Assembly: GCA_038087875.1 (NCBI GenBank)
Contig: JAXLNO010003381.1
Coordinates: 62,001 to 96,975, forward strand
DNA length: 34,975 nucleotides
Source of the DNA: Malacoraja senta
Lineage: Eukaryota
Direction of reading: 5' to 3'
Shown here: positions 4,530 to 31,413 of the stretch, in pieces
Numbering within the stretch: the first letter of the stretch is position 1
Layout: the number at the start of each line of letters is the position of its first letter
Translations under genes and position numbers: made by a program
Notes under the pieces: generated by a model
What the model saw: the letters and a program-made list of their open reading frames with translations, nothing else
Database searches by the model: none
Told to the model about the DNA's origin: nothing

Positions 4530-4646
4530 GATCTATGCGAAACCATGAACCTGTCTGAACAGCACAAATTACATGTTTTTTTATTGTTAAAACTCAGCTT
4601 GTGCTGCTGCAGTGTGAGTGATCTTTCATCATTAATGTGCCAACAG

Positions 4647-4970
4647 GGTCATGGGGAGTAACTGGAGCTGTGGAGGTGAGGGGAGAGTTGGGGCAGTCGG
4701 TCACTGTGCAATGTCTATATGGTCAGGAATACAGTGACTACAGGAAACTTTGGAGTAAAGGTGATTATTACTCGACATCTTATACCGTGGTTTCTACTGA
4801 TCTCCCACGACAAGGGAGAACATTGATGACTGATGACAAAAGACAACGGATAGTTTCAGTAACCATCGACAACCTGGAGAAGAGTGATGAAGGACACTAC
4901 TGGTGTGTGATAGCAAAGAGAGGACATTCACCCATTGAATCGACCCCCATCTTATTGAAGGTTTCTGAAG
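4647..4970 (+). CDS. Gene A exon 2: Ig V-set domain V1 (CD300/pIgR/TREM-like)
   Basis: Acceptor CCAACAG|, donor GAAG|GTACGT, 324 nt, phase 1-1, no stop. Motifs VRGELGQSVTVQC.Y, K.W.K, GR...D, SVTIDNL..SDEGHYWC, LKVS. Confidence 0.92.
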
Positions 4971-5547
4971 GTACGTTGACGATCTCTCCTCACTCTCCCA
5001 GATGTGAAAATTCGAGCCTGGGAATTCCGGCCTCGGACCTGACGGTGACTCGTTGACTCATCCCCGGGGGTCGGGGTGAGGGGGCGGGGTTGGTAGATAC
5101 CTCATTTACTGGGGTCCCGGCCCGTGGGGCCACACCAAGAGCCCACTGTCCCAGGAGCAGTATGGGGGGGGGGGGGGACTGCCATACACCAGCCCCACGG
5201 AACGTCCCAGCTACCGGCGGTTCTGATGCTGACGGCTCATTTCCCCAAAGACGATCGCTCCGGGACTAGAATCTCTGCCGGCCCTCACAGGGGCACCCGC
5301 CCCCTCCCTCTCTCGTCCTGCCCGTCACTGTCACACCCACCACACACACAACATCTGAAGTAGGATCCCAAGCCTTTACATCGTCAGTTCATTCCTTCCA
5401 CAGATGTTGCCTGACCTGCTGAGTTACTCCAGCACTTTGTGTTTTGCTCAAGATTCCAGCACCTGCAATTCCTTGTGTCTCACAAACCTTAGTGACCCAT
5501 GAGCTGAGTTTACTGTTGTCACCTGTACTGAGGTGACAAATATAATA

Positions 5548-5935
5548 ATGGATACTTTCAAGAGAGAGCTAGATAGGGCTCTTCACGATAGCGGAGTCAG
5601 GGGATATGGGGAGTAGGCAGGAACGGGGTACTGATTGGGGATGATCAGCCATGATCACAATGAATGGCGCTGCTGGCTCGAAGGGCCGATTGGCCTACTC
5701 CTGCACCTATTGTCTATTGTCCGTTGAGTTACAGGAAAAAGCTTTTACCATGTTTCCAATGAGGCCCAAGTCATTGGATATTTTTAAGGTGCAGATTGAC
5801 AGGTTATCGATTAGTACGGGTGTCAAGCGATTTGGGGAGAAGGCAGGAGAATGGGGTTGAGAGGGAGAGATAGATCAGCCATGATTGAATGGCGCTCAAT
5901 GGGCCAATGGCCTAACTCCGCCTCTATCATTTATG
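5548..5935 (+). mobile_element. Two CR1-type LINE 3' end fragments
   Basis: Typical tails ...GATCAGCCATGATCACAATGAATGGCGCTGCTGGCTCGAAGGGCCGA...CCTATTGTCTATTGTC. The second fragment recurs at about 31975-32170. Confidence 0.65.
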
Positions 5936-6165
5936 AACGAAGAACCCGCATGAGCTGAGTGATATAGACTTTACACGGAGCCACACAAACTGTACAAGAT
6001 GAGATACTCAACGGGATGGGCAGCTTCTGTGGAGAGAGAACGAGAGTTAATGTTTCGGGTAGATTCCTTCAACCAAATTGCATTATTTCCAATTCAGTCT
6101 GCGTAACGCAAATAGTCCATGGATCCTCCCGCTCCCAAGTTCTTCTCCAACGTAGAAGACATGTG

Positions 6166-7549
6166 TTGTTCTTTCCCAGCACTAATAGCATGAGGGGAAG
6201 CCTGGCCCCTTCCGGGTATCTCGCCACCTTCGTTTGCGAGGACTCTCTTGAATCCATATGCATGTGCTCCAGTACGTTCCAACATACTTTAGAATTTGAA
6301 GTCAGTTACCCACTGACCACTTGCACTCCCCTCCACAGAGGGGGAGATTCGTAGACAGCCCTGAACAGGTGCTGCCGCAGACCGCTGCCTTGTGGTATGC
6401 TCATCAGCTATACCTCCGATGTCAGAGTCAGAACAAAACTGACTCCTTGTGCTCACCTCCTCCAAGAGGGAGACATCATGCAGCCCTTCTACGGGTGCTG
6501 CTGCCACGGATATAAAGCTCCTCTTGCTGGAGAACATCATGATGGGGCATCCTCTCCATCAGGAGCTCTTTCTAGACAGCCCTTCAACAGGTGCTGCTGC
6601 CACGGGCCCCTGAGGAGACCCGAGGATATAAAGCTCCTCTTGGTGGAGCATATCGTGTAGGAGCACCTTCTCCATCAGGAGCTCTTTCCTGGACAGCCCT
6701 GATATTCTTTTTATTGGCTCACCAGTCCCAGTTGGTATGGCGAATTTCGATGGCATGCCTGGCACCCCTGGTTCTTGGCTTCCATGCCTTGGGGTATGCT
6801 GTTCTGCAATACCTCCAACCTCAGGGTCAGAACAAAACTGCCCCGGTAAGCTCACCTCCTCCATGAGGGAGACACTATGCAGCCATTCTACAGGTGCTGC
6901 TGCCATGGGCCCCCAAGAAGACCCGTGGATATAAGGCTCATCTTCATGGAGCAGATCTTCCCTGTACAGCCCTTGAACAGAAGCTGCTGCCACGGGACCA
7001 TGGATGACCCACGGATATAAAGCTCCTCCTGGAGCATGTCATGATGTCAGACGTCCGCAGACCTTGCTCCTAGTGGGAGAGGAACTCCTGGCTCGACTCA
7101 TCGGAGTCCAAGGGCCTTACTGATTTTTTTGTGACTTACCTCCCCACAGCAGTAGCCACGGTGCTCATAGTCGGCACCCTGGTGATACCACCTTCCTCGT
7201 GGATTTACCCCTCCACGGGAACCACACCGGTCTGGAAGACGCTGACTGCCTTTGTCAGTGACTGGAGTTCCGCGGTCCAGACCGGAGTCTCCCCACAGCC
7301 CAAAGCCGGTTTCCCCGCGGCCCGTCCGGACTTCGCTACAATATCTAGCAGGAAACGTCTGTAAGAAGAGGTTCCTGCAAGAAAACACAACCTGGTAAGA
7401 AATATAAAACTTACCTGTAGGTTTAAACTTACCGCTGGCGGAAGCGACGCGCCTGCCAGTCCGGTGCTTCGCCATGCGAACGACGATATGAAGCGCATGC
7501 GGACTGGCGGGGCTTCTTCACGGAATCACTCACGTGACTCCGAAGTAAA
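6166..7549 (-). mobile_element. DIRS-like (tyrosine-recombinase retrotransposon) 5'/ORF1 fragment with internal tandem duplications
   Basis: Minus strand starts with a TCACGTGAGTGATTCCGTGAAGAAGCCCCGCCAGTCCGCATGCG-type terminus and has ORF1-like peptides (KFAIPTGTGEPI). No RT or YR domain is visible, so the family is assigned from memory only. Confidence 0.45.
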
Positions 7550-8060
7550 TTTACACTGAGTCACACAAACTGTACAAGATGAGATACTCAACGGGTCGGG
7601 CAGCATCTGTGGAGAGTGAACGAGAGTTAATGTTTCAGGTAGCTACCTCCAACCAAATTGCATTATTTCCAATTCAGTCCTGTAACGCAAATAGTCCATG
7701 GATCCTCCCGCTCCCAAGTTCTTCTCCAATGTAGAAGACATGTGCCTAACTCCAGCAGCAGGCAGATAACACAGCCTGTGGGACTCTGAAGGGCATGAAA
7801 GAAGTATCTGAATGCTTGCGACCATCCTGCGGCATCTTAATGGGTGAGCCGCCTGTCTAGATCAAGAGGCTTGGTCCATCTATGGTGGCCTCAGAAGGAT
7901 CCTTGCTCAAATCTCTGGATTGGGATTTGAACCCAGGAATCTCCCCACACAGAGTAAGAGCGCTCCCAACTGAAGCATCTCCCACACCTCACTAAAGTGG
8001 CACAGAACGTGCTTTCAGACATTTAATGTTCAAAAACTTAATTCACTTTATCTCCACAAG

Positions 8061-8202
8061 AGTCTCAAACACGCCGCCCGGATATGGTCACCACCACCTC
8101 TGCAATAATAAGCACAAGGGCTCTGACCACCCTGCCTCAAGATGCACGAACCACCGAGGCAGCAAGTTCCACTGAGGCTTCTGATTCAATACTTCCAAAC
8201 AG
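8061..8202 (+). CDS. Gene A exon 3: Ser/Thr-rich mucin-like stalk
   Basis: Acceptor TTTATCTCCACAAG|, donor AACAG|GTTAGT, phase 1-2. Encodes (E)SQTRRPDMVTTTSAIISTRALTTLPQDARTTEAASSTEASDSILPN. Paralogous to 32689-32845. Confidence 0.8.
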
Positions 8203-8269
8203 GTTAGTAACTCGACGAGCCAACTCAGCCTCACCTGAGAACAAAGTAGTTAAGTTCAATTCAGCCCAG

Positions 8270-8535
8270 TTAAAAGATACAGCGTGGAAATGGACCCTTT
8301 GGCCCACCGAGTCCGCTCTGAGCAGCGATCTCCCCATACACCAGTTCTGTTCTACACACTGGGGGCAATTTACTACAAACCCGCGCATCTTTGGAATGTG
8401 GGAGGAAACTGGAGAACCCACAGTAAACTCTTGCAATCACAAGGAGAATGTACAAACTCTGCACTGACAGCACCGGTAGTCAGGATCAAACCCGGGTCTC
8501 CTGCGCTGTGAGGCAGCAACTCTACCACTGTGCCG
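8270..8535 (-). mobile_element. V-SINE (HE1-like)
   Basis: Same family as 379-646. A copy sits at the equivalent position after the gene B stalk (about 32920-33200). Confidence 0.75.
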
Positions 8536-8763
8536 ACATCTCAATAGGCGAGCCTCATGTCTAGATCAAGGGGCTTGGTCCATCTATGGTGGCCTTGGAA
8601 GGATCCTTGCACAAATCTCTGGATTGGGATTCGAACCAAGAATCTCCCCACACAGAGCGAGAGCGCTCCCAACTGAAGCATCTCCCACACATCACTAAAG
8701 TGGCACAGAACGTGCTTTTAAACATTTAATGTTCAAAGACTTCATTCACTTTATCTTCACAAG

Positions 8764-9200: not shown

Positions 9201-10416
9201 GTCAGTGACTCAAAGGACCAACTCAGCCTTGCACAGCTTCACCACAGTGTCAACGGCTGAAGTGAGCAGCCCATGATTAACAAGAAGGATAAATACAATC
9301 AGCGAGTTTACTGGCGATCGCCGTGGATTATTGTTACTTACTATATAACAGCAGATATTCCCTCCCTCACACATTGTTCAAAAATCATCTTCGTTCCAAT
9401 CTCCACAGCCTGATCTTCCTCTCCTGGTGCTGTCCAGGAAGAGTACAGACCAGGTGGACTTTGCTACATCGGGAGAGGGCAGCATTCCTGCTGCCTGACT
9501 CGCTGAGTTACTCCAGCATTTTGTGACCATCTACAATCTTTCTCAGTTGTGAAAGTTTGAGTAGAGGGGAAACGTATCCTGTTGTCCGTAAAATCAGTCC
9601 CAGTACTTTGAGAAAGCGTGGCTGATCACATTCCAGTCCATTGATAAATACTCCTTGGCCCTGACTAAAGTCCCTCTGTCCTTAGTACACCCAGTGGCCC
9701 TACCATTGTGAATGTCTACCCTTATTTATTGCCAAAATCTAATAACTTCACACTTAGCACGGTTCAATACCTGCTGGCATTGCTCTGCCCAACATGCCAG
9801 TTGCTTCTTATCCCTCCGTGGTCTATGATTATTGTACTATCCAAAATGATACAATTTTGGTGTAATCTGTAAACTCGTTAATCATACTTCCAACATTAAC
9901 ATCTAAGGCCGGCAGATGGGACTAATGTAGATAAAGGCATCTTGGTCGGCGTGGGGAAATTGGGTCAAAGGACATGTTTTCATGCTCTATGTGTGGCCAC
10001 CAACATGAACATCTAAGTTGTTAATGTATGTAGTCATGGAACACCTCCAAGGAATGGGTGCATGTTGCGATATAAACATCTCACCAATGTCTACGCCACA
10101 ACCTTGGATCACACTGAATGATTCCGTGTGCAATATGATGAAAAGAAAATTCCCAGCGTTGATCTGTGATAAATCTATGTGGAAGTAATAATATTTCCTT
10201 GGATTTCCAGGTACATCATGTTGATTGTTTGCCGTGTTTGGGGTGTGTTACGCTGGGTACTCTTTGGAGTTCTGCTTCTCTTCCCGGTTTCCATCAGCTG
10301 TGTGACAACTTTTAAAAGGTAAAAGTTTGCAATCTCTTCACTCTGGTGTTCACATTAAATTCAATTGGAAATGATGGGAATTTACTTTAGAATTCTGGAG
10401 ATAAAGTGTGGACATA

Positions 10417-11837
10417 CAGTGCCCTCCATAATGTTTGGGACAAAGACCCATCATTTATTTATTTGCCTCTGTATTCCACAATTTGAGATTTGTAATAGAA
10501 AAAATCACGTGTGGTTCAAGTGCACATTGTCAAAGGTATTTTTACATATTTTGGTTCCACCATGTAGAAATTACAGCTGTGTTTATACATAGTCCCCCCA
10601 TTTCAGGGCACCATAATGTTTGGGACACATGGCTTCACAGGCGTTTGTAATTGCTCAGGTGTGCTTAATTGCCTCCTTAATGCAGGTATAAGAAAGCTCT
10701 CAGCACCTAGTCTTTTCTCCAGTCTTTCCATCACCTTTGGAAACGTTTATTGCCGTTTATCAACATGAGGACCAAAGTTGTGCCAATGAAAGTCAAAGAA
10801 GCCATTATGAGACTGAGAAACAAGAATAAAACAGTTAGAGACATCAAGTCAAACCTTAGGCTTACTGAAATCAACTGTTTGGAACATCATTAAGAAGAAA
10901 GAGACCACTGGTGAGCTCACTAATCGCAAAGGGACTGGCAGGCCAAGGTAGACCTCCACAGCTGATGATAAAGAAAAATATCATCTATAATAAAGAAAAA
11001 AAAACAAACACCCTGTCCGACAGATCAGAAACACTCTTCAGGAGTCAGGTGTGGATTTGTCAATGACCATTGTCCGCAGAAGACTTCATGAACAGAAATA
11101 CAGAGGTTACACTGCAAACCACTGGTTAGCCACAAAAATAGGATGGCCAGGTTACAGTTTGCCACAAAGTACTTAAAAGAGCAACCACAGTTCTGGAAAA
11201 AGATCTTGTGGACAGATAAGACAAAGATTAACATATCAGATTAATGGCAAGAGCAAAGTATGGAGAAGAGAAGGAACTGCCCAAGATCCAAAGCATACCT
11301 CCTCATCTGTGAAACACGGTGGTGGGGGTGTTATGGCCTGGGTATGTATCGCTGCTGAAGGTACTGACTCATGTATCTTCATTGATGATACAACTGCTGA
11401 TGGTGGTAGCATAATGAATTCTGAAGTGTATAGACACATCCTATCTGCTCAAGTTCAAACAAATGCCTCAAAACCCATAGGCCGGCTGTTCATTCTACAG
11501 GAAGACAATGATTCCAAACATATTGCAAAAGCAACAAAGGACTTTTTCAAAGCTAAAAAATGGTCAATTCTTGAGTGTCCATGTCATTCTGAACCCAATT
11601 GAGCATGCCTTTTATATGCTGAAGAGAAAACTGAAGGCGACTCTCCCCCAAAACAAGCATAAGCTAAAGATGGCTGCAATACAATATAAATACTGCTGTA
11701 AAAATGGCCTTTATTAATATTTGACAATGTGCACTTTAACCACATGTGCCTTTTTTCTATTACAAATGTCAAATTGTGGAGTACAGAGGCAAATAAATAA
11801 ATGATGGGTCTTTGTCCAAATATTATGGAGGGCGCTG
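10417..11837 (+). mobile_element. Tc1/mariner IR/DR-type transposon, defective
   Basis: TA|CAGTGCCCTCCATAAT ... ATTATGGAGGGCGCTG|TA with TA target duplication. About 210-bp IR with inner and outer ATAATGTTTGGGACA repeats. Frameshifted transposase from ATG 10765 (MRTKVVPMKVKEAI..., WTD, QEDND.KH, NPIEH). A 3' internal deletion removes the inner right DR. Confidence 0.93.
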
Positions 11838-11839
11838 TA

Positions 11840-12116
11840 GGCCCTACAGCCAAACAATTCCGCGCCGAGCAATGATCACCCCGTACACTCGCACTATCCT
11901 ACACACGAGGGACAATTTACAATTATACAGAGGCCAATTAACCTATAAAACAACACGTCATTGGATTGTGGTAAGAAACCGGAGCACCCGGATAAAACCC
12001 ACGCTATCACAGGCAGAACATACAAACTCCCTACAGACAGCACCGATAGTCATGATCAAACCCGGGTCTCTGGCGCTGAAAGGCAGCAACTCTACCGCTG
12101 CGCCACTGTGCCACCC
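11840..12116 (-). mobile_element. V-SINE (HE1-like) whose tail is split by the Tc1 insertion
   Basis: Paralog of 379-646. The remainder of its tail (AGATAAAGTGTGGACA) lies on the far side of the Tc1 at about 10399-10414. Confidence 0.75.
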
Positions 12117-12618
12117 AGGGTCATTTCCTCGGGTAGAATTTGATGATAGTGATTATAAACTGCGTTTTAATTGTTATTCAAGGAAAAAAACAGCCGAGAT
12201 CTTGGAGATGGGGTCGGCAGCGGTGGAGGGAGGAGAGGAACAGCGCCGGTGAGCTGGCTGGGTAAGGCCTCACCTCGCATGGAGACGGCGTGGGAGGCGA
12301 GGGGAAAAGGGTGCGTTGGTGGGTCGAGGTGTGTGCGGAGTGCGAGTGGGCTGCTGGAGGCCCTGCAGCAGCCCGTGGATCGGGTGCCGCTGGAGGTCCC
12401 ACAGAGGTCAGGGACGAGCGCGCGGATCGGACACGGCCTGCAGCGGCACGGAGCGGCGGTGGAGGCACCAACAACATCGCCAGGCCAGGCCGACCCCTGC
12501 AACTCCCACCCACTGCCGTCTCCATGACAACGGGCCTTTAAACCCAAAATAAGACTCTACTTTTTTACCAATTTGATCTTTAAGAATATAAAATACCGCC
12601 AGAAATGTGGCAACTCTT

Positions 12619-13131
12619 TATTTTTATTTTATTAGAAGTAAGTACAATTGCATACAATCATATTTTCATAATACCTTTTATGTACAGCTTCTTATTTAAA
12701 TTTTTTTTTGTAATAAAGAAGAAAAAGAGAAAAGTTAGATAATGAAAAATAGAAAAATGTGAGATATATAGTGTGTGAAAAAGAAAAATAGAGAGTGAAA
12801 AAAGAAAGTTGAGACATAGAAAATAGAAGAAAGAGAGTAAAAGAAGAAAAGAGAAGAAAAGAAAATAGAAGTAAGGAGATCATTTATAATCTTGACCATC
12901 CGCAGTCACGGATTAGCTTTTACACTTGTGTTGCACCATATGTTTCCAAAAAGACGACAAATGGAGACCAACTCGTTATGAATTGGTCAAATTTATCTAT
13001 TAGGAGGAATCGCATTTCCTCAAGATGTGCGGTATCCAACATACTTGCAATCCACATTTTGAGCGTTGGTATTGGTGTATTTTTCCAAAATTTCAATATT
13101 AATTTTTTTGCTATTATTAAACCATAATTAA
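12619..13131 (-). mobile_element. 5'-truncated L1/Tx1-type LINE, 7-bp TSD AACTCTT
   Basis: Minus-strand ORF2 C-terminus (IIAKKLILKFWKN...MWIASMLDTAHLEEMRF...FDQFITSWSPF), pyrimidine-rich 3' UTR and A-rich tail. AACTCTT at 12612-12618 and 13132-13138. A single-copy empty site lies at 1133-1139. Confidence 0.85.
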
Positions 13132-13373
13132 AACTCTTGTGTACTGTATCATATAATCTGCTATTAATACACGTGTTTTTAGCTTCGACTGTGCTTATAT
13201 AAAGGAAGATTTTTACTGAATTCTGTGCAAAAGAAATTTCACTGTACCCATGTACATGAGACAATAAAGTACCATTGAACAATGGGGATATAAAAACGAT
13301 TAAATGATTACAAGTATTGAACTGTGGACACGCGTTAGAAGAATAAGATAAAAATTAAGTGTAATCGTTATAT

Positions 13374-13599
13374 TGTAGCGGCGCCACCTAGCGCACGCAG
13401 ATATCGAACCCGGCGTTCGGAAGCCGCGGTCACGTGATCCGGGAGAGGCCGTTGTTTTCGCGCGGTTTTCCCTTGGCGCGAGTTAGTTGAATGCTAACCA
13501 CCGATGTGGTCAGACGTGTTTGACAAACCTGTGTACTGCAACTTACTTTCGAATAAAGTTTTGGTTGAAACTCCAGTAGTCGTTTATCAAACCGCTAAA
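13374..13599 (+). repeat. Gypsy 5' LTR
   Basis: TGTAGCGG...CCGCTAAA. Contains E-box GTCACGTGAT and AATAAA. 221/226 identical to the 3' LTR. Confidence 0.95.
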
Positions 13600-13600
13600 T

Positions 13601-13618
13601 TGGTGACCCCGACGTGAT
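13601..13618 (+). promoter_or_regulatory. Primer binding site complementary to the tRNA-Trp 3' end
   Basis: TGGTGACCCCGACGTGAT is the reverse complement of the vertebrate tRNA-Trp 3' 18 nt (ATCACGTCGGGGTCACCA, from memory). It begins 1 nt after the LTR. Confidence 0.9.
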
Positions 13619-13641
13619 AGCCGTCGTTAGACAGAAGAATT

Positions 13642-14382
13642 ATGCAGGAAGAAGGTCCCTCTGCAGAATCGGCCAGCACGAGGCAAGGCTCACCGGCTTT
13701 CAAACTGCCCGCCTTTTGGACTGATCAACCTCAAGTATGGTTCGCCATTGTGGAAGCGCAATTCCACCTTCATCGTATCGACCACGATGAGACCATGTAT
13801 TTTCATGTGGTAGGAGCGTTACCGCAGGACTGTGCCTCGAGGCTGTTGCCCTTTATCAGAGACCCTCCGTCCAGCGGCAAGTACGAAGGGTTGAAGGCCC
13901 TGTTGTTTCACGCTTATGGTCTGACCCGTAGAGACCGGGCGGCAAGACTGCTGCACATGGACTGCATCGGCGACCGAAGGCCATCGACGATCATGGCCAA
14001 GATGTTGGCCCTGATGGACGTGCATCGACCCTGTTTGCTTTTCGAACAGGCGTTCTTAGAGCAGATGCCTGACGAAGTGCAGCTGATGTTAACAGGAGCT
14101 GATTTCATTGACCCGCAGCGGCTCGCAGAAAGAGCAGATGAGCTCTGGGCGCTCAGACGGCGGGAAGTACACGCCGTCGCCCGCCCCATAGTCACACAAC
14201 ATGTGCAGCCGCTCCGACAACGAGAGGAAGAGACTCAGCCCAGCGTCGAAGACGAAGCGTCGCGGACATCGACCTACTGCCAACGGAGATGGTGCTACTA
14301 CCACCAGCGATACGGGCTCGGAGCCCAAAGATGCCGAAGCCCTTGTGCGTTTCCGGGAAACGCCTCCGCCGATCGTCCATAG
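13642..14382 (+). CDS. gag: Gypsy Gag (246 aa, uninterrupted)
   Basis: N-terminal FKLPAFWTDQPQVWFAIVEAQF. C-terminal C-x2-H-x9-C-x3-C (CYYHQRYGLGAQRCRSPC). Confidence 0.9.
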   Translation: MQEEGPSAESASTRQGSPAFKLPAFWTDQPQVWFAIVEAQFHLHRIDHDETMYFHVVGALPQDCASRLLPFIRDPPSSGKYEGLKALLFHAYGLTRRDRAARLLHMDCIGDRRPSTIMAKMLALMDVHRPCLLFEQAFLEQMPDEVQLMLTGADFIDPQRLAERADELWALRRREVHAVARPIVTQHVQPLRQREEETQPSVEDEASRTSTYCQRRWCYYHQRYGLGAQRCRSPCAFPGNASADRP

Positions 14383-17300
14383 AGGCGAACGCGATCGGCC
14401 CAAACACACGCCTATTCGTCCGTGATCGCCATGCCGGTTACCGTTTCCTGGTAGATTCAGGTGCGCATGTCAGTATCCTGCCTCCACAACACCCGGGACC
14501 TCCGTGCGGGTAAGGTGGGACCTGTGCTCTCGGCCGTAAACGGGAGCGATATTCGCACCTACGGTACGCGGACCGCAAAACTAAATTTCGACTCCCACCA
14601 GTACAGGTGGAAGTTTATCGTTGCTGACGTCGCCCAACCGATCCTGAGCGTCGATTTCTTGCGCGCGTTCTCCCTGTTAGTCGACGTACGGGGTGATCCC
14701 TGCGTCGGGCCCACGCCCTGACACACCGCGCAACCCGTCAACGCCCTCGCAGCAACTATCCGAGGTAGCTGAGATCCAGAAACCTTTCACGACCCTGCTC
14801 GCCGATTTTCCAGGGTTACTCACGCCCCGGTTCGACGGGGCCGCGCCCCGTCATGGCGTAGTCCATCACATTCCCACCGAGGGTCCACCAGTGCACGCCC
14901 GCGCGCGCTGTCTCCCGCCCGATAAACTGCGCATCGCGCGGGACGAGTTCCAGCTCATGGAGGACATGGGAATTGTCCGGCGGTCGGATAGCCCATGGGC
15001 TTCCCCGTTACACATGGTACCTAAAGCGTCCGGGGGTTGGAGGCCTGGCGGCAAATATCGACGTCTAAACGCAATAACCACGGATGACCGGTATCCGGTC
15101 CCGAACATTCAGGATTTCTCGGCCCATTTGGAAGGGGCGACCGTCTTCTCGAAAGTCGACCTCATCCGTGGGTATAACCAAATCCCGGTCCACCCTGACG
15201 ACATCCCTAAGACGGCCACCATTACCCCGTTCGGCCTTTTCGAGTGGCTCAGAATGCCTTTTGGCCTGAAGAACGCAGCCCAGGCATTCCAAAGGTTAAT
15301 GGATCAGGTCGGCCGGGGTTTGCCATTCGTTTTCATCTACCTGGATGACATCCTGGTAGCCAGCCGCTCGGAGGCAGAACATACCAAACACCTCCGCTTA
15401 CTTTTCGAACGGCTGCACGAACACGGGTTGGTAATCAATCCCGAGAAGTGCCAGTTCGGGCTGCGCTCTATCTCGTTCTTGGGGCATAGTATCACTTCCC
15501 AGGGAGCGCAACCCCTGCCCGAGAAAGTTGACGCCATTCGGCAATTCCCCCGGCCATTGTCGTTTAAGGGTCTCCAGGAGTTTATCAGGATGGTTAACTT
15601 CTATCACCGTTTCGTCCCGTCGGCAGCCGCCATCTTGCGGCCGCTATTCCAATGCCTGGCTGGTAAGCCCAAGGACCTAGTTTGGTCTAAGGAGGCACAG
15701 AAAGCTTTTGAAGGGTCCAAGACGGCGTTGGCCAACGCCACAATGCTAGTACACCTCAGGGCTTCGGCCCAATCGGCACTAACCGTAGACGCCTCCGATG
15801 TCGCGGTGGGGGCCGTCCTTGAGCAGCGGGTAGGCAGTCGCTGGGTGCCGCTGCCGTTTTTCAGCAAGCAACTGCGAGCCCCGGAAATTAAATACAGCGC
15901 TTTCGGCAGGGAGCTCCTTGCGCTTTACCTAGCAATCCGCCATTGCCGCTATTTCCTAGAATGGCGAGCTTTCACCGCATTCACCGATCACAAGCCACTG
16001 ACGTTCGCTTTGACCAAGGTTTCCGATCCATGGTCTGCTAGGCAGCAACGGCACCTTGCCTACATTTCGGAATTCACGTTCGACATTCGACATGTGGCAG
16101 GAAAGCTGAATGTCGTGGCCGACACATTATCTCGTCCAGCGCTGCCCGAGGTCTCTGCGCTCAGTCTGGGTATCGATTACCAGGAGTTGGCCGCTGCCCA
16201 ACGGGTATGGGGATTTACCACAAAACTGAATCTGGAGTGAAGCTGGTTGAAGTGCCTTGTGGCGCCTCCAGCGCGTGGGTCCTTTGTGATGTTTCCACCG
16301 GTAAAGCCCGACCAATTGTCCCGGTCGCTTGGCGATGCCGGGTCTTCGACACCATCCATAGTTTAGCGCACCCATCAATTCGCGCTACCTCTGCCCTAGT
16401 CGCTGCGAAGTACGTCTGGCATGGCTTGAGGAAGCAAGTCGCTGCATGGGCTCGTTCCTGTATCCCATGCCAGACCTCCAAAGTGCAGAGACATGTACAC
16501 CCGCCGGTCCAGGATTTCGATGTCCCGGACGGCCGGTTCCTGCACATCCATGTAGACCTGGTAGGTCTCCTACCTTGTTCGCGCGGGGCTACCCACTTAC
16601 TGACTATCGTGGACAGGTTTACCAGGTGGGCAGAGGCCATCCCGTTAGCGGATACCTCCGCCGAGGCATGCGCGAGGGCCATTGTCTCGAATTGGGTCGA
16701 CCGTTTCGGGGTCCCCTCACATATAATGACAGACCGCGGGGCCCAGTTCACATCTTCCCTATGGGGCAGTATGGCGCAGATGTACGGTGCCACGTTACAT
16801 CAAACTACTGCTTACCACCCTGAGTCTAATGGGCTGGTCGAGCGATTCCACAGACATCTTAAGTCGGCGTTAAAGGCACGACTCACCGGCCCTGATTGGG
16901 TCGACCAGTTACCTTGGGTCCTCCTGGGCATCAGGACAACGCCCAAGGAAGACCTCAAAGCATCCTCGGCCGAGTTAGTTTATGGCTCGGTTTTGCGGGT
17001 TCCAGGGGATTTCTTGCCTACCCCCCGGGATCAGGAGAATGCCACCTCGCAGGTGTTGGAGGACCTTCACGAGCGGGCGCGCACTTTGGTCCCAGTCCCA
17101 ACTTCCCGGCACGGTTCATCTTCGGTTCATGTGCCTTCTGTGTTACGGGATTGTTTTTCTCCGTAGAGACGCTCATCGCTCGCCGTTACAGCGGGTGTAC
17201 GAGGGTCCGTACAAGGTGCTCAATGCGGGGGTTTCAACATTCACTTTGGACATGGGCGGCAGAGAGGAGTTTGTTTCTGTAAGCCGCCTCAAGCCTGCAC

Positions 17301-17570
17301 ATGTCGACGAGGATAGCCCAGTGACAGTGGCTACCCCACGGCGTAGAGGACGTCCACCTGCCGTTTTGACACCTTCAACACCCGTTCCCTCCGATCGCGT
17401 TTCTCTGTTCCCCTTTGTTACGCCCGTCCCTCGGTTGCGTTTTTCGCGTCCCTCCGGTCCTGTTGTGCCGGTCCCAAATGTTACGCTCGCCCCACAACCT
17501 CGGACTACACGTTCCGGTCGCACCGTCCGTTTACCCGTGCGTTTCCGTACCGCGGATTTTGGGGGGGGCC
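14355..17570 (+). pseudogene. pol: Gypsy Pol (protease, RT, RNase H, integrase with GPY/F) broken by 4 frameshifts
   Basis: PR FLVDSGA; RT PFGLKNA...YLDD; RNase H DAS, ELLA, TDHKPL, ADTLSR; IN HHCC, VDLVG, TDRGAQF, GLVERFH, YEGPYKV. Spread over ORF-track pieces 14289-14513, 14461-14721, 14693-16240, 16207-17166 and 16982-17635. Confidence 0.93.
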
Positions 17571-17571
17571 A

Positions 17572-17797
17572 TGTAGCGGCGCCACCTAGCGCACGCAGAT
17601 ATCGAACCCGGTGTTCGGAAGCCGCGGTCACGTGATCCGGGAGGGGCCGTTGTTTTTGCGCGGTTTTCCCTTGGCGCGAGTTAGTTGAATGCTGACCACC
17701 GATGTGGTCAGACATGTTTGACAAACCTGTGTACTGCAACTTACTTTCGAATAAAGTTTTGGTTGAAACTCCAGTAGTCGTTTATCAAACCGCTAAA
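17572..17797 (+). repeat. Gypsy 3' LTR preceded by polypurine tract (17561-17568)
   Basis: Direct repeat of 13374-13599, followed by the ATAT TSD. Confidence 0.95.
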
Positions 17798-17949
17798 ATA
17801 TCAATATTGTTATTCTGCTGGAATGACGCCCAATAATCATCGTTTAGCTTATCAGGGCCAGAGTGTTCACCAGTTGGAGATGTACAAATCTCATCACCTT
17901 GATCCTACAGCATCACCACACCACACCTGTGTCCAATTTAACTTGACCA

Positions 17950-18520
17950 CTAGAGGAGGAATTTCTTTAGCCAGAGGGTGATGAATCTGTGGAATTCATT
18001 GTCACAGACGGCTGTGGAGGCCAAGTCAATGGGTATTTTCAAAGTGGAGATTGATTGGGTTTACTCAGGGTGTCAAAGGTTGAGGGGAGAAGGCAGGAGA
18101 ATGGGTTGGAGGGGGAAAGATAGATCATCCATGATTGAATGGTGTAGACTCAATGGAGCAAATGGCCGAATTCTGCACCTATGTTTGCAGACACATCCTG
18201 ATATTCACCCAAAAGACAGCAGTACGTAGACTAGAACTCAAAGCTGGTTCTCCAGAGTGTGAACTTTTAATTTTGTTACCAATTGAATTTTTTGTAAAAC
18301 CCTGCAACATTGAATAATGAATAAAATAATCCAATGTAATAAAAGATGCTGAATTTTTGTCATATGGTCATGTAATAAGAGTAGCATTGGGCCATTCGGC
18401 CCATCAAGTCTCCTCCGCCATACAATCATGGCTGATCTATCTCTCCCTCCTAACCCCATTCTCCAGCATTCCCTCCATAATCTCTGACCTCTATGTACTA
18501 ATTAAGAATCTATCTGGTGT
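17950..18520. mobile_element. Cluster of CR1-type LINE 3' fragments in both orientations
   Basis: About 17950-18185 (+) reads like NLWNSLSQTAVEAKSMGIFK.EID. About 18380-18500 is the reverse complement of a similar tail. The block is absent from the paralogous position near 1430. Confidence 0.6.
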
Positions 18521-19113
18521 TTATCTGGTGACGTGAGTGGACTTACCTGATCACGTTTGGCGTTGTCTAATTTCTCCTGGGTAACGTTTCAACACATGAG
18601 AAGCTGAGGAAGGCTGGACAAATTAGTGACGCGCATTTGGAGGTGGGTAAACAGTTCACAAGGTCACACGTTCCAGGAGTAGAATTTGGCCATTCGGCCC
18701 ATCGAGTCTACTCCGCCATTCAAACATGGCTGATCTCTGCCTCCTAATCCCATACAAGTTCAGACACAGTGTGCCCGCATTTGGGGGAGGGGTTGACGGG
18801 GTGGGCAAGGGAATGTTTGCGGTGGTGGACAGAGCGCCAGTCAAGTGGGCAAATGTCACCAGGATGAACCAGAGCTTCGAGGAGATGCTCCAATCCAGGC
18901 AACTGGAGAGCATTGCAGCCAACTCCTGATAGGTGCATTGTCCGTGGTGAGGAGGCTGGGGGAGGTGGCAAGTGAGTCACCAAGTTAGTCTCGAACCACT
19001 GCAAAGTCGTTTCCTGAGTAAACGGAAATTGACTGTTTGACTTCTGTTGTGAATGAGGAAGAGGACAACTCAAACGCAGTGCAGGGACCAAACCGATCCA
19101 ACGCAGCCGAGAC

Positions 19114-19210
19114 ATGGCGGTGGGACAGGGAGAATTCACCCACCAGAAACGGCCCAGATCCAGGGGAACAGTCGCTCTGCTGGTTCTTGTCGCTGTTGGT
19201 CTCACATCAG
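19114..19210 (+). CDS. Gene B exon 1: signal peptide
   Basis: 94/97 nt identical to 1557-1653. Encodes MAVGQGEFTHQKRPRSRGTVALLVLVAVGLTS(G). Phase-1 donor CAG|GTAAAT. Confidence 0.85.
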
Positions 19211-19469
19211 GTAAATCGTTGTTTTACAAAATGCTCTGTTCTTTAGAATTATTTACCAGCGCCTTGAATTATTTGTAACCAAGGACTTCTCTGTACTGTG
19301 TGGGGAGCTGATGATAAATTGCTCAACACTCGTTAGTTCCTGTAGAGACTTCCATCAGCGGTTGTTGTCGTGATGTGTGCAGCCAAATTGCACACAGCTA
19401 GCTCCCTGTGGAGAAGGGAGATAACTACCGACAGCTGGCCTTGTGGACCTCATTGAAACTTACTGAATA

Positions 19470-19705
19470 ATGCAATGCCTGGATAGAGTGGATGGGGTGA
19501 GGATGTTTCCACTAGTGGGAGAGTTTCGGACCAGAGGTCGCAGCCTGAGAATTAAAGGGCGTTCCTTTAGGAAGGAGATGAGGAGGAATTTCTTTAGTCA
19601 GAAGGTGGTGAAACTGTGGAATTCATTGCCACAGAAGGCTGTGAAGGCCTTCAATAGATATTTCTAAGGCAGAGATGGATCGATTCTTGATCAGTACGGG
19701 TGTCG
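19470..19705 (+). mobile_element. CR1-type LINE ORF2 C-terminal fragment
   Basis: Encodes CLDRVDGVRMFPLVGEFRTRGRSLRIKGRSFRKEMRRNFFSQKVVKLWNSLP. A shorter paralog lies at about 1945-2030. Confidence 0.8.
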
Positions 19706-19977
19706 TTCGCTCACGGCGGCGCTCCCTCCCCTCCAGTCACCGTGCTTCACGCACACAGACCCGGCTCCACCCCTCTCTCTCCCCGGGGAGACGCGGTGAA
19801 AAATACACGGAGGGCTGGGCAGGGGGTTTGAGCAACGTTTACAAACATCGGCCTCAGCTCACACCCGGACCCCAGCATCAGCTCCCGCCGCTGGCCCTCT
19901 CCCTCCCTTCTCTCCTTCCCTCTTCCCTTCCTCCCTTCTTTCCTTCCCTCCCTCCTTCCTCTCTCTTTTCCCTTCTC

Positions 19978-20109
19978 NNNNNNNNNNNNNNNNNNNNNNN
20001 NNNNNNNNNNNNNNNNNNNNNNNNNNNNNNNNNNNNNNNNNNNNNNNNNNNNNNNNNNNNNNNNNNNNNNNNNNNNNNNNNNNNNNNNNNNNNNNNNNNN
20101 NNNNNNNNN
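19978..20109. other. Assembly gap (132 N) between a CT-rich and an AC-rich simple repeat
   Basis: Run of N, inside gene B intron 1. Confidence 0.99.
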
Positions 20110-21250
20110 CCACAGACAACTAACACACACACATAACGCACAGACAACTAACACACACAACTAAGTTAGGATGGGGTAGAGGCCCAAAGGGTAGGATGGG
20201 GCTGAAGCCCAAAATTTAATGCCTGGATTGGTTTTTCACCAATGGTTATTGGTTTTCCAGGATCTATTTAATTAAATTACTTTTTTTTAAAATCATTTCA
20301 CAGTCACTAAAACAAGTGGTATTGTAACTATGTACTTTTCAGAGGTGATCTACACATTTTGTTTGTAGGCTTACATGTATGCAATTTTATATTAATTTTA
20401 TATTAAAATGTCGCTTAGATCAGTTAAAATGTCGCTTAGATCAGTTTGGTCCATTAAGTTGCATGCATTTTTTAAGTGCACATTTTGATTACTTTGCATT
20501 CTACCATAGGGATATAAAGTCTAGAATAGACTTTAATCAAATTTCTATGAATCTACAGACCTTGGCTGGGAACCTGGGGCTCGCCAAAATTGTTCCCAAT
20601 TGGGCCCCGCAACTCCTAAGGCCGGCCCTGCATGTACCTGTCTAACTGTTTCTTAAACGATGGGATAGTCCCTGCCTCAATTACCTCCTCTGGCAGCTTG
20701 TTCCATACACCCACCACCCTTTGTAATTGATGACACATCATAATTATTCCAGGTGGACGTGGAGTTTGAAACATCAGTGGCAGATCCAGCTTCCACCACA
20801 GGCCGGGAAGTTTAGTTCAACGGGGCACAAAGTGCTGGCGTAACTCAGTAGGTCAGGGAGTATCTCATGGTCTTGACTTGAAACGTCACATATCCATGTT
20901 CTCCAGAGATGCTGCCTGACCTGCTGAGTCACCACTGGCACCACAGGCAGCTGGCTATTCAGCTTTAGTAAAGCACAAAGTGCTAGAGTAAGTCAACAGG
21001 TCAGGCAGCATCTCTGGAGAACATCGATAGGTGACGTTTTGGGTTGAGACCTGAATAAGGGGTAGGCCAGATGAGGAAAAACCTTTTCACCCAGAGTTGT
21101 GAATCTGTAGAATTCTCTGCCACAGAGGGCAGAGGAGGCCAATTCACTGGATGTATTCAAGAGAGAGTTAGATATAGCTCTTAGGGCTAATGGAATCATG
21201 GGATATGGGGAGCAAGCAGAACGGTACTGAATTGGGATGATCAGCCATGA

Positions 21251-21830
21251 ACAGTCTGACCTGGTCACAAAACATCGCATCACTAGTTAAGAGAGCGCAG
21301 CAGCGGTTGCACTTTCTGCGCCGGATGAGAAGAGCTCACCCTCCCCATCCCATCCTCACCACTTTCTACAGGGGCACCATAGAGAGCATTTTGACCAGCT
21401 GTATTTCTGTCTGGTCTGGGGACTGCAAAGCCTCCGACTGGAAGTCCGTGCAGAGAGTGGTGAGGACGGCTGAAAAAATCATCGGGACTTCTCTTCCTTC
21501 AATCCGGGACATTGCATGCAAACGTTGATTGTCCAAGGCCAACAGCATTATAAAAGCCCCCACACATCTCCATCATGGACTGTTCACTATGCTGCCCTCG
21601 GGCAAAATATATCGCAGTATAAGGAGCAGAACGGCCAGGTTTTGCAACGGCTGCTACCCCCGAGCCATCAGACTCTTGAATTCCATATAATGTGCCGCCA
21701 CTATTATCTATTTATCTATTTTATCCTTTTGTTATTTTATGTTGCACGGTGAGCCAGATGCAACAAAATTTTGTTCCGACTTGCATTTGTTGGTGTACTT
21801 TTGAATGACAATAAAGTCTTTGATTGAAAA
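21251..21830 (+). mobile_element. Rex1/Babar-type LINE 3' fragment nested in a CR1 tail (about 21070-21910)
   Basis: Encodes KRAQQRLHFLRRMRRA...ILTTFYRGTIESILTSCISVW. It splits the CR1 consensus GATCAGCCATGA|TCATATTGAATGG. Confidence 0.75.
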
Positions 21831-22559
21831 TCATATTGAATGGCAGAGCTGGCTCGAAGGGCCGAATTGCCTACTCCTGCGCCTATTTTCTATGTTTATA
21901 TGTTTCTATGAATCGTCACCTATCCACTTTCTCCAGAGATAGTTCCTGACCCGTTGAGTTACTCCAGCACTTTGTGTCCTTTTGTGTATTAACCAGCATT
22001 TGCAGTTCCTTGATTCTACCAGTTTAATGGGGAAGTGGGTTGTACTGAGATTGAACACAGGGTGGGTCAGAGTGAGAGACAGGTTGGCTTCCTGTCACAT
22101 GACCACCACTCAGTGCAAGCCACGCCCACAGGGAAGGAGGATCTGGGCGCCAGGTAAATTCAGAAGCAGTTCTGCTTTCACTGGAACTTGGGGAACAATC
22201 CCAGGGAACTGGGAATTAACACCAGCGGGAAAAGCATGAAAGTGCAACAGGATCTGTACAAAAGAAGAGACAAAAAATGCTGGAGTAACTCAGCGGGACG
22301 GGCAGCATCTCTGGAGAGAAGGAATGGGTGAGGAAACATCACCCGTCAGTTTCTCCAGCGATGCTGCCTGTCCTGCTGAGTTACTCCAGCTCTTTGTGTC
22401 TATCTTTGGTGTAAACCAGCACCTGCAGTTCCTTGCTACACATGATCTATGCGAAACCATGAACCTGTCTGAACAGCACAAATTACATTTTTTAAATTGT
22501 TAAACCTCAGCTTGTGCTGCTGCAGTGTGCGTGATCTTTCATCATTAATGTGCCCACAG

Positions 22560-22883
22560 GGTCATGGGGAATAACTGGAGCCGAGGAGGTGAGGGGAGAG
22601 TTGGGGCAGTCGGTCACTGTGGAATGTCAGTATGGTCGGAAATACAGTGACTACAGGAAACGTTGGAGTAAAGGTTATGATTTATGGTCATCTGAGACCG
22701 TGGTTTCTACTGATCGCCCACGACGAGGGAGAACATCGATAACAGATAACAAAACACAACGGATAGTTTCAGTAACCATCGACAACCTGCAGAAGAGTGA
22801 TGAAGGACGCTACTGGTGTTTGGTAGAAAAGGAAAGAGATTCACCCATTGAATCAGCCCCCATCTCATTGAAGGTTTCTGAAG
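22560..22883 (+). CDS. Gene B exon 2: Ig V-set domain V2
   Basis: Acceptor CCCACAG|, donor GAAG|GTACGT, 324 nt, phase 1-1, open frame. 79/108 aa identical to V1. Confidence 0.92.
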
Positions 22884-23239
22884 GTACGTTGACGATCTCT
22901 CCTCACTCTCCCAGATGTGAACATGCCAGCCTGGGAATTCCGGCCTCGGTCCTGATAGTGACTCAGTGCCACATCCCCGGGGGTCGGGGTGAGGGGGGAG
23001 GGGACCTCATTTACTGGGGTCCCGGCCCGTGGGGCCACACGAAGGGCCCCACTGTCACAGGAGCAGTATGGGGGGGGGTCGGGGAGATGTCAGACACCAG
23101 CCCCACGGAAGGTCCCAGCTACCGGCGGTTCTGCTGCTGAGGCTCATTTCCCCAAAGATGATCGCTTTACTGGGGAAACCGGCCCCTCACCTGGAGAAAG
23201 GGGTCAAGGGGGGAGGGTAGGGAGCAGGTTAGTAGAAGA

Positions 23240-24167: not shown

Positions 24168-24169
24168 AT

Positions 24170-24203
<34 letters not shown>

Positions 24204-28330: not shown

Positions 28331-29010
28331 GTTCCTTTCCTTTGTTTCCATGTGCCCCCAAAATTTAGGTTACTTTATAACTTACTATTCTAGTTTAAAC
28401 TACTCAATGCTTATTCTCTGAGCTCTTCTTTATCAGCGCTTTCTTTCTCTGCCCTAGCCCGTAACATTTTACCATTTTACACTACCTAATTAACCCCTAT
28501 CCCCCCTGATTTTACATATATACATTATATCCTGTCTGATCAGATTTTCTTCTCTTCTCTAAGAATGGTCACCACAGGATAATACCTGCCATATGCGGAC
28601 CACGCCCCCTTCTCAACAGACTAATCTGCAGGTTTTAGGATGCCTTGCCTAAGCAAACCCCGCGCTCTTCTCAACGGGTGGTATCTGCAAAGTCTTATAT
28701 ACATTCTGTACAAAATACTTATCAGCTTAACTATTTTCTACTTACCCTACTGCGCAGACTTCTCGAGCAATCCTCCACGTCTCCTAGACAATTTAGTGCC
28801 AGATTCTTGGGTCGGAGAGACCTTCTAACTACCTAGGCACAGAAGTGTCCCCAATGGGTTCCCATGTACAACAGGTTATTAGTCCAAATGAAACGGAAAA
28901 CCGCATAATTTTTATGGGTGGCCACCCTTTTTCCTGTTGTCCCTAGGAGCCACAGAGGGGGCAGGGAAGCGCCCTGGGCTGTTTGTCTTTTAATTAACAG
29001 TCTCTTACCG

Positions 29011-29028
29011 ACCCTGCTCGGTGCGCCA
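29011..29028 (-). promoter_or_regulatory. ERV primer binding site, tRNA-Ser(UGA)-like
   Basis: TGGCGCACCGAGCAGGGT matches 17/18 nt of the complement of the vertebrate tRNA-Ser(UGA) 3' end as I recall it (TGGCGCAGCGAGCAGGGT). It lies 4 nt from an LTR-terminal CA (29033-29034), with AATAAA (about 29098) and TATAAAAA (29186-29193) upstream on the minus strand. Confidence 0.7.
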
Positions 29029-29680
29029 ATTATGTTGTGGTTTTCAATACTCAAATTAATTCAGGCCACATGGAGAATTCTTCAAGAAGTTTAAACTTTT
29101 ATTTGCAAACAAAAGTTGGATCCCCCCCCCCCCCACATCATCAGTCCACGTGGAGCTCTCTGACCCACAAACAAAGGATCGTCTCTTTTTATACCATTTT
29201 CAACTCTGCATGCCCTACCCCTGTTACATTTCCATATCCAATCATTTTCTGACATTCCCTCATCATCAGCCAATCACTTGCTCCCACTTATCTCCTCCTT
29301 CCCAGTACATTTCCATATTTGCAACTGATGTAGGTAGTCACATGACTCCCTTTGTGGCCCCTCGCCTGCCATGTGCTCGTAACTTCTTTGTTCAGTCGTT
29401 ACATTCCAACAAAGTGATATCCAAGAAACGTGGACAATTCCCAGAACCCACTTATCAAAATATAAGAGATACAGTGGTCACTCAATTTATATAAACAAGA
29501 CATTGTTCCCATTAAACTCTATACATCTTTGGGAAGAATGTTACCTCTTAAACTACAGATCTAAACACAGGGGGTCTAATGTTTATAATCCTAATTAAAG
29601 CACAATATATTTCCTAGATGGTCTCGTTACAAATCATATCTTTAACTAACATTACCTTGTATTATAAACCTTAAAAGTAT

Positions 29681-29841
29681 TGTGATGTATGTAATATAAT
29701 TAGCATATGTTATGTCTTGTGCAAGGGGACGCATGCGCTAGGGGAGACTCAAGGTGGCGTCATAGAATAAAGAAGCTTGTCAGTTTACTCCTGTATCTGA
29801 GAGTTATTTTGGGTCAGTTCCAAGCACCCACATACACTACA
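29681..29841 (+). mobile_element. 161-bp solo LTR with 5-bp TSD AGTAT
   Basis: TGTGATGTATG...CATACACTACA imperfect terminal inverted repeat, internal AATAAA, AGTAT at 29676-29680 and 29842-29846. Confidence 0.75.
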
Positions 29842-31089
29842 AGTATGAATTTACTCTATCTTTGCAAACACACACATCCTATTCTCGTACAAATGTCACA
29901 CTTGATAAATGATAATTGCTTCTTGGTCAGCTCACACACCCTCCCCTTTCTTGTTATCTCTATGGGATGAAATTCCAAACTCATTGTTAGGCCTCTTTTT
30001 ATGACTCTGCTTTCACACTTATAACATTACTCAAAGGATGTTTACATCTGCAGACCGCCATCTCTATCTCAAAGTATGGCCACCTCAGTTTTCATAAACA
30101 TAAGAAATCCAACATACAAAGGTTACATACCCCTCACCCGAGCACCTTCTGCCCTTCACATATGTCTTATCTCTTATCCCAACATGAGTATAATTAAAGT
30201 AGCTAAAGACTGGATCACAGAATGCAGAGGCGCCCTTCTATCTTAGACAAGTATAAACAGTCATCAGTCGTAAACCCCAAGCTCTTTGTGCTGTAGCAGA
30301 GCTAAGGAATGTGTCATAACGAAAGAGCAAATGGTCTGTGACCAAATGGCCTGTGACCTGAAAACGGGTCCCACTGCCAAACTACTTTTGAATACAGATT
30401 ATATAAGATACATTTAATATAGAAGATAATATTTACTATAATGAGGAAAACCATTTTCACCCAGAGAGTTCCACTTTCTCCAGAGATAGTTCCTGGCCCG
30501 TTAAGTTACTCCAGCACTTTGTGTCCTTCTGTGTATTAACCAGCATCTGCAGTACCTTGTTTCTACTAGTTCAATGGGGAAGTGGGTTGTAGTGAGATTG
30601 AACACAGGGTGGGTCAGAGTGAGAGACAGGTTGGCTTCCTGTCACATGACCACCACTCAGGTCAAGCCACGCTCATAGGGAAGGATGATCTGGCCGCCAG
30701 AGAGATTCAGGAGCAGTTCTGCATTCACTGGAACTTGGGGAACAATCCCGGTGAAATGGAAATTAACACCAGCAGGAAAAGCATTAAAGTGCAACAGGAT
30801 CTATGCAAAAGAAGAGACACAAAATGCTGGAGTAACTCAGCGGGACGGACAGCATCTCTGGAGAGAAGGAATGGGTGAAGAAACATTACCCGTCGGTTTC
30901 TCCAGAGATGCTGCCTGAACTGCTGAGTTACTCCAGCTCTTTGTGTCTATCTTTGGTGTAAACCAGCACCTGCAGTTTCTTGCTGCACATGATCTATGCG
31001 AAACCGTGAACCTGTCTGAACAGCACAAATTACATGTTTTTTATTGTTGCTGCAGTGTGAGTGATCTTTCATCATTAATGTGCCAACAG

Positions 31090-31413
31090 GTTCAAGGGGA
31101 ATAACTGGACCCAAGGAGGTGAGGGGAGAGTTGGGGCAGTCGGTCACTGTGGAATGTCAGTATGATCCGAAATACAAAGACAACAACAAGCTATGGAGTA
31201 AACGTGATTCTTACTGGTCATCTTCTGAGACCGTGGTTTCTACTGATCACCCACGACGAGGGAGAACATCGATGACTGATAACAAAATACAACGGATACT
31301 TTCAGTAACCATCGACAACCTGGAGAAGAGTGATGAAGGACACTACTGGTGTGCCATAGACATAACATTGAACTTCGATGAAAGGACCTCCATCTCATTG
31401 AAGGTTTCTGAAG
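31090..31413 (+). CDS. Gene B exon 3: Ig V-set domain V3
   Basis: Acceptor CCAACAG|, donor GAAG|GTACGT, 324 nt, phase 1-1, open frame. One codon longer in the C' region and one shorter in the CDR3-like loop than V1/V2. Confidence 0.92.

Follow-up and report, generated by a model that had tools for sequence, protein, structure and literature searches.

Serine replaces both cysteines of the C-C′ disulfide in three CD300/pIgR-like V domains of the skate Malacoraja senta

The V domains of the CD300 family carry two disulfides together with the motif Y-W-C-R, and the MDIRs (modular-domain immune-type receptors) of skates resemble CD300, TREM, and pIgR, as set out in work on the carp SITR receptors (PMC3031540). 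In the structure of CD300lf bound to phosphocholine, the head group lies in a cleft between the FG loop (complementarity-determining region 3, CDR3) and the C-C′ loop, with the bottom of the cleft formed by the Cys36-Cys44 disulfide together with Tyr34, Gln41, Arg42, Trp89, and Met100, and a Ca ion held by Lys94, Gly96, and Asp98 (PMC6166816). Here we describe a stretch of 34,975 nucleotides from the skate Malacoraja senta (contig JAXLNO010003381.1, positions 62,001 to 96,975 of the forward strand; hereafter the window), with exons for three V-set domains, V1, V2, and V3, in each of which both cysteines of this second, C-C′ disulfide are replaced by serine. The window holds two neighbouring receptor genes, gene A, predicted to be of the activating type and encoding V1, and gene B, predicted to be of the inhibitory type and encoding V2 and V3. 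Among the receptors already known from skates, the MDIR1 of the 2006 MDIR abstract is said to combine a charged membrane residue with one immunoglobulin (Ig) domain.

A six-frame scan of the window locates the motif K-x-W-S-K three times, in each case on the + strand and inside an Ig-like open frame. The V1, V2, and V3 exons are each 324 nt long and of phase 1-1, with canonical junctions (cag/G ... AAG/gtacg) and translations of 107 aa without stops, all three of which match the Pfam V-set family PF07686 (E-values of 2e-11 to 2e-14). In all three domains the codon following Trp35 is AGT and that of the partner site is TCT, both encoding serine and each a single substitution from TGT, with the canonical B- and F-strand cysteines, Cys22 and Cys86, retained together with Trp35. 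Residues 1-51 of V1 align residue by residue with mouse CD300lf without gaps, and the window serines therefore occupy the positions of CD300lf Cys36 and Cys44; the C-C′ loop of V3 has a one-residue insertion. With Ser/Ser at these sites, the CD300-type second disulfide, running from the Y-W-C of strand C to strand C′, is not present in V1-V3, and its replacement in the three window domains is real. As V1-V3 are duplicates of one another, this represents one inherited state, not three independent events, and the stronger figure is the absence of the C′ cysteine from 21/21 sampled skate domains, compared with both cysteines in 378/441 domains of the wider family. The initial annotation of this DNA had reported the K-x-W-S-K motif in all three copies, the partner serine, the distance of AGT and TCT from TGT, and the retention of the canonical cysteines and tryptophan, and on each of these points our reading agrees with it.

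The nearest solved structure by sequence is domain 5 (D5) of human pIgR (domain E-value of 7e-8; phmmer against the PDB), in which Y-W-C-K lies opposite L-W-S-K of the window, with mouse CD300lf next among solved structures (E-value of 8e-16). An AlphaFold (AF2) model of V1, built from an alignment of 55 sequences, has nine strands and a mean predicted local distance difference test score (pLDDT) of 93.4, and superposes best on mouse CD300lf in a Foldseek search, with a template modelling (TM) score of 0.88-0.92 and a root mean square deviation of 1.7-1.8 Å at 34% identity, followed by D1 of pIgR, CD300a, TREM, and NKp44. In both searches CD300, pIgR, TREM, and NKp44 rank ahead of other V-set families, in keeping with the CD300/pIgR-type assignment made initially. 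Across 55 domains, the residues Cys22, Trp35, Asp80, Gly82, Tyr84, and Cys86 show little or no variation.

An exhaustive profile search with V2 returned 1912 matches, which were rescored with a hidden Markov model (HMM) built from V1-V3. A domain score of at least 108 bits is reached by fourteen proteins, all nameable ones being elasmobranch, with all others at or below 85 bits, comprising mammalian CMRF35-like, amphibian and teleost pIgR-like, and sturgeon CMRF35-like molecules. Word-index protein searches, with NCBI nr among the sequences covered, yielded further skate, ray, and shark members. By this separation of scores, V1-V3 belong to a CD300/pIgR-like subfamily confined to elasmobranchs. 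Skate proteins of the W-S-K type are already in public proteomes, where automatic prediction has labelled them "CMRF35-like molecule 3" or "pIgR-like", and no published description of the Ser/Ser trait was found in a search for work on MDIRs or on shark and skate CD300, in which the carp SITR study was the only paper to emerge. The skate trait is a variant within a known kind of receptor, not a new kind of receptor.

Similarly to the CD300 and CMRF35-like molecules, the window genes place a V-set domain on a Ser/Thr-rich stalk and belong to a tandem cluster with paired forms, one with a charged anchor and one with immunoreceptor tyrosine-based inhibitory motifs (ITIMs). The likeness to CD300lf extends to the K-x-W motif, to Trp85 (Trp89 of CD300lf), and, for V1 and V2, to the FG-loop pattern K-x-G-x-x-P. 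In contrast to CD300lf, the pocket-floor disulfide Cys36/Cys44 is Ser/Ser in the window domains, Tyr34 is replaced by Leu or Arg, Gln41 and Arg42 by Tyr and Ser, and the Ca-binding Asp98 by Ser in V1, and, unlike CD300, some skate genes have two or three V domains. Whilst pIgR provides, in its D5, the best solved sequence match, gives its name to automatically annotated public relatives ("pIgR-like"), and in its human form has a D2 that is likewise missing the C-C′ pair (PDB alignment), the window genes combine their one or two V domains with a mucin stalk and activating- or ITIM-type anchors, and have neither a five-domain ectodomain nor a long sorting tail. Nothing in their sequence ties the window genes to polymeric Ig transport.

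Beyond the window, the state of the two cysteines was followed through the subfamily. The skate sample comprises 21 domains, 18 of them public (Amblyraja, Leucoraja, and Rhinoraja) and three from the window; the C′ cysteine is absent in all 21 and the C-strand cysteine also in 20, with Ser, Arg, or Thr at site 36 where both are missing. Within the same subfamily, both cysteines are retained in Mobula, Hemitrygon, Hypanus, Carcharodon, Heterodontus, Mustelus, Rhincodon, and Stegostoma. The homologues from the first six of these genera, annotated as "pIgR-like" or "CMRF35-like", show 47-57% identity, the same two anchor types, and the shared motifs V-V-S-T-D and S-D-E-G-x-Y-W-C, and differ in their W-C-[KR] ... 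C. Other members lack only the C′ cysteine and retain an unpaired C-strand cysteine, namely all domains of Narcine, those of Heptranchias and Pristiophorus, and one domain of A. radiata, and in Pristis and Scyliorhinus both cysteines are gone, with Arg at site 36. Nearly all C′-less domains of the subfamily have Ser as the partner residue. Two Rhinoraja mosaic receptors of V and C2 domains with ITIM tails retain W-C...C in 7/7 V domains; the loss accordingly belongs specifically to the V-mucin subfamily, and skate receptors in general do not share it. The proposal that the loss defines a distinct elasmobranch subfamily thus stands in part: an elasmobranch-only subfamily exists, but the loss is not its mark, with shark and stingray members keeping both cysteines. 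What the loss distinguishes is the branch of skates, and the electric ray, the sawfish, and some sharks show related states.

In a maximum-likelihood tree of 68 domains, the skate domains form one clade (support of 100/98), placed within a larger clade, shared with Narcine and Pristis and devoid of the C′ cysteine throughout (99/90), with an all-Cys stingray clade as its sister (100/97), and with the shark domains, which show losses of their own, outside the batoid groups. Deletion of site 36 and of the whole C-C′ loop returns the same groups, with supports of 88/97, 73/87, and 100/97. On this tree the loss is derived, the skate clade being nested within Cys-bearing lineages, and the possibility raised beforehand, a grouping with a V-set family that ancestrally lacks the disulfide, is contradicted by it; the presence of the C′ cysteine has to change four times. 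V1 and V2 are sisters (99/94), and V3 falls together with domain 2 of A. radiata P0157 (92-93/85; P numbers denote public proteins). The Ser/Ser state, common to three skate genera, therefore predates the duplications behind the three copies, as had been supposed.

The codons suggest a path for the loss. In the window, A. radiata, and L. erinacea, Ser at site 36 is always AGT, Arg is AGG, Asn is AAT, and the single Cys is TGT, and site 44 is TCT, or GCT once. AGG, AAT, and TGT each lie a single step from AGT, with AGG two steps from TGT. Additionally, an unannotated V exon of this subfamily in A. radiata (L001:25388, CM021389.1) carries the motif K-L-W-N-K, its site 36 being Asn (AAT) and its partner site Ser (TCT). 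The disulfide was probably lost stepwise, with the C′ cysteine going first. Replacement of this cysteine by Ser would have left a free cysteine, of the kind that the electric ray and some sharks still have; the C-strand Cys36, now without a partner, would then have become Ser (AGT) before the skates diversified; and site 36 would since have drifted among one-step neighbours, to Arg (AGG), Asn (AAT), Thr, and once to Cys (TGT). The lone skate Cys36 (P0003, TGT) is nested beside an AGT domain, and would more readily be explained by reversal than by retention.

Loss of this disulfide is recurrent in the wider CD300/pIgR-like family. Among 441 full-length domains tabulated from the profile matches (438 public and three from the window), both cysteines are present in 378 and absent from 43, with the first alone in 14 and the second alone in six, so that one or both are absent in 63 (~14%). 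Furthermore, human pIgR D2 is without the pair, and Ser/Ser also occupies these two sites in domain 2 of CMRF35-like molecules from sturgeon and paddlefish (P0036, P0045, and P0057). There the context is K-Y-W-S-[KR]-G ... D-S. These domains belong to a distant subfamily (65-71 bits) in bony fish, and their Ser/Ser therefore represents an independent, convergent loss.

The initial annotation had further held that the C-C′ loop is the most variable part of these domains and that the loss of the disulfide had set it free, and neither proposal is upheld. Mean entropy in the skate domains is highest in the FG loop (1.58), compared with 1.31 in the C-C′ loop and 1.14 in the BC loop, and the C-C′ loop of stingray homologues with the disulfide has an entropy of 1.35. 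There is accordingly no sign that the loss freed the loop, because it is equally variable in stingray homologues that keep the disulfide, and a rise in C-C′ variability caused by the loss is ruled out by the same comparison. The differences among V1-V3 are concentrated in the loops, with 48-70% of BC, C-C′, and FG loop sites differing, compared with 13-18% of framework sites (Fisher p of 3e-3 to 3e-8). The ratio of nonsynonymous to synonymous change (dN/dS) is 2.5, 1.2, and 1.3 among the three pairs, and the V exons diverge by 11-16%, compared with 4-6% in the upstream intron. These figures speak against pseudogenes and favour a diversifying binding face.

The residues that line the CD300lf pocket are mostly replaced in V1-V3, with V1 having Leu34, Ser36, Tyr41, Ser42, Ser44, Trp85, Lys90, Gly92, Ser94, and Ile96 at the aligned positions. 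The outline of the pocket thus appears to be kept in V1, with a different lining, and a changed ligand specificity of the skate domains is likely from the alignment. The skate domains would present a remodelled, more polar pocket, and the concentration of paralogue differences in the C-C′, FG, and BC loops suggests diversified ligand recognition by a paired activating and inhibitory set. A bolder proposal is that loss of the pocket floor shifted recognition from conserved phospholipid head groups to diverse, possibly pathogen, ligands, with the BC, C-C′, and FG loops germline-diversified under positive selection, and with the Narcine, sawfish, and catshark forms as living intermediates. This we regard as unlikely.

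MDIRs (Cannon et al. 2006) are skate paired receptors related to CD300, TREM, and pIgR (PMC3031540, in which MDIR2-4 of Raja eglanteria carry the accessions ABC86796.1, ABC86797.1, and ABC86799.1), and, like the window genes, they form a multigene set with CD300/pIgR/TREM-like Ig domains and charged-anchor or ITIM forms, so that the trait might simply be that of the described MDIR family, with MDIR genes found once more. The window genes differ, however, in comprising one V subfamily and a stalk, with no C2 domains. No Raja eglanteria protein is present among the word-index matches (lengths of 106-819 aa), and the MDIR-style Rhinoraja V+C2 receptors, with their complete cysteine pairs, belong to another V subfamily, scoring 44-54 bits to the window V HMM compared with 153-188 bits for the skate V-mucin subfamily. 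This indirect comparison, through the MDIR-style Rhinoraja proteins, together with the difference in architecture, suggests that the window genes form a branch separate from the MDIRs, and a mere rediscovery of MDIR genes is quite improbable.

Two further explanations concern the history of the exons themselves. Many V-set families, such as the Ig and T-cell receptor (TCR) V domains and NITR, have the B-F disulfide only, and ~10% of the domains matched by the search are without both extra cysteines, as would be expected if the window domains came from V-set ancestors in which the C-C′ disulfide was absent from the start, with nothing more than general V-set similarity to CD300 and pIgR. The nearest relatives, however, are the shark and stingray domains with the same strand motifs and both cysteines at aligned sites, the skate clade is nested among such lineages, with one-Cys intermediates in existence, and the alignment with CD300lf is gap-free over residues 1-51, leaving this explanation barely credible. 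Alternatively, the Ser/Ser exons could be decaying pseudo-exons under relaxed selection, with dN/dS near or above 1 (1.2-1.3 for V1-V3 and V2-V3) a sign of neutrality, in a cluster that is rich in transposon insertions. Decay of this kind is hard to reconcile with three open exons with canonical splice sites, with framework residues near-invariant over the 55 domains, with substitutions clustered in three loops and not spread evenly, or with the long retention implied by annotated Ser/Ser genes in three skate genera, and we consider it very improbable.

We hold it highly probable that the window genes belong to a skate multigene family of CD300/pIgR-like receptors in which the CD300 fold and the B-F disulfide are kept and Ser36/Ser44 were inherited from the skate ancestor, probably by stepwise loss, with an effect on ligand binding that would follow from the changed pocket. 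Members of this family are built as type I membrane proteins, with a leader, one or two V domains, a mucin-like stalk, and a membrane anchor. Several points weigh against this interpretation. AlphaFold is insensitive to disulfides, and the V1 model cannot show a change in stability or in loop geometry. Sampling of paralogues was partial, through representatives at 50% identity and word-index searches, and unseen Cys-bearing skate members are possible. An approximately unbiased (AU) test in which all C′-less domains, of sharks and batoids, are forced together does not reject that arrangement (p = 0.084), and one or several independent C′ losses are compatible with this value. Furthermore, the grouping of skates, Narcine, and Pristis against the stingrays conflicts with the accepted batoid species tree, and old paralogy or tree error is involved. 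The Cys36 of P0003 may be a retention and not a reversal. Finally, no tail or ITIM exons of gene B were found within the window, and the linkage of the gene B leader to V2 spans an assembly gap, this being the sole claim that needs continuity there.

The gene models were obtained by tblastn with four skate proteins and by reading of splice junctions (Table 1). The gene A leader is identical to those of A. radiata P0003 and P0157 over 33/33 aa, and its membrane exon has an Arg within the hydrophobic span, an activating-type anchor that would pair with a signalling adaptor. The anchor type of gene B carries a two-ITIM tail in relatives, as in P0160, P0159, P0069, and P0058, and relatives with the gene A anchor type have short tails. 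The type I layout with a stalk is hence accompanied by the charged-anchor form in the window and by the ITIM form in relatives, an arrangement usual for paired activating and inhibitory receptors.

Table 1. Predicted exons of genes A and B and the assembly gap in the window (position 1 is the first nucleotide of the window).
Feature	Positions	Strand	Basis and remarks
Gene A, leader (signal peptide) exon	1557..1655	+	ATG to CAG/gtaaat donor; tblastn, junction read
Gene A, V1 exon, V-set domain	4647..4970	+	Ser36 AGT 4754-4756, Ser44 TCT 4778-4780
Gene A, Ser/Thr-rich mucin-like stalk exon, ends approximate	8057..8203	+	tblastn P0003 stalk, 78% identity
Gene A, transmembrane exon, ends approximate	10206..10322	+	tblastn P0003/P0005, 77-81% identity; frame read
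Gene A, last coding exon, short tail to stop	12181..12252	+	tblastn P0005 tail, 78% identity
Gene B, leader exon	19114..19212	+	tblastn, 94-97% identity to A. radiata leaders
Assembly gap, 132 N	19978..20109		intron 1 of gene B, between leader exon and V2
Gene B, V2 exon (first V)	22560..22883	+	Ser36 AGT 22667-22669, Ser44 TCT 22691-22693
Gene B, V3 exon (second V)	31090..31413	+	Ser36 AGT 31197-31199, partner Ser TCT 31224-31226
Gene B, Ser/Thr-rich stalk exon, ends approximate	32685..32843	+	tblastn P0002/P0157 stalk, 77-83% identity
Gene B, transmembrane exon, uncharged	33463..33570	+	tblastn P0157, 86% identity

The assembly gap is flanked by CT-rich and CA-rich simple repeats, with no exon or reading frame crossing it, and the order and orientation of its flanks are the same in the loci of Amblyraja radiata and Leucoraja erinacea, to which the non-coding sequence of the window is 88-97% identical. 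The clusters of this subfamily lie at ~34.4-34.7 Mb of CM021389.1 in A. radiata and at ~29.7 Mb of CM054030.1 in L. erinacea. Self-comparison places genes A and B within tandem segmental duplications into which a long terminal repeat (LTR) retroelement and further repeats intrude. Positions 1-5259 duplicate 11600-23166 in tandem, and the terminal coding exon of an upstream paralogue of the activating type lies at 707-778, with a short tail that ends like that of gene A. The LTR retroelement occupies 13374-17797, between the two genes, with LTRs of 226 bp that are 97.8% identical and long gag, reverse-transcriptase, and integrase frames at 13642-14382, 14693-16240, and 16207-17166, and a Tc1/mariner-like transposase remnant is present at 11309-11602, in the last intron of gene A. 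The leaders of the two genes show 97-100% protein identity to A. radiata genes, compared with only 57-75% for the V domains, the V exons evolving much faster than the remainder of the gene. Use of the V domain as a module in multi-domain shark proteins was considered and rejected, with the stretches between the V domains of P0015, P0166, and P0168 found to be membrane-anchor-like and to contain no C2 domain. These public shark "pIgR-like" models are probably fusions of adjacent receptor genes.

The C-C′ disulfide counts as a hallmark of CD300, pIgR, and TREM, and a skate subfamily without it constitutes a natural experiment on the loss of a structural disulfide and on the ligand pocket, with the one-Cys and Arg states of other elasmobranchs and the convergent Ser/Ser of sturgeons as points of comparison. 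The trait is older and wider than was assumed when it was first noted in the window, and comes with informative intermediates. Annotation based on the Y-W-C motif will miss or misname the Ser/Ser receptors of skates.

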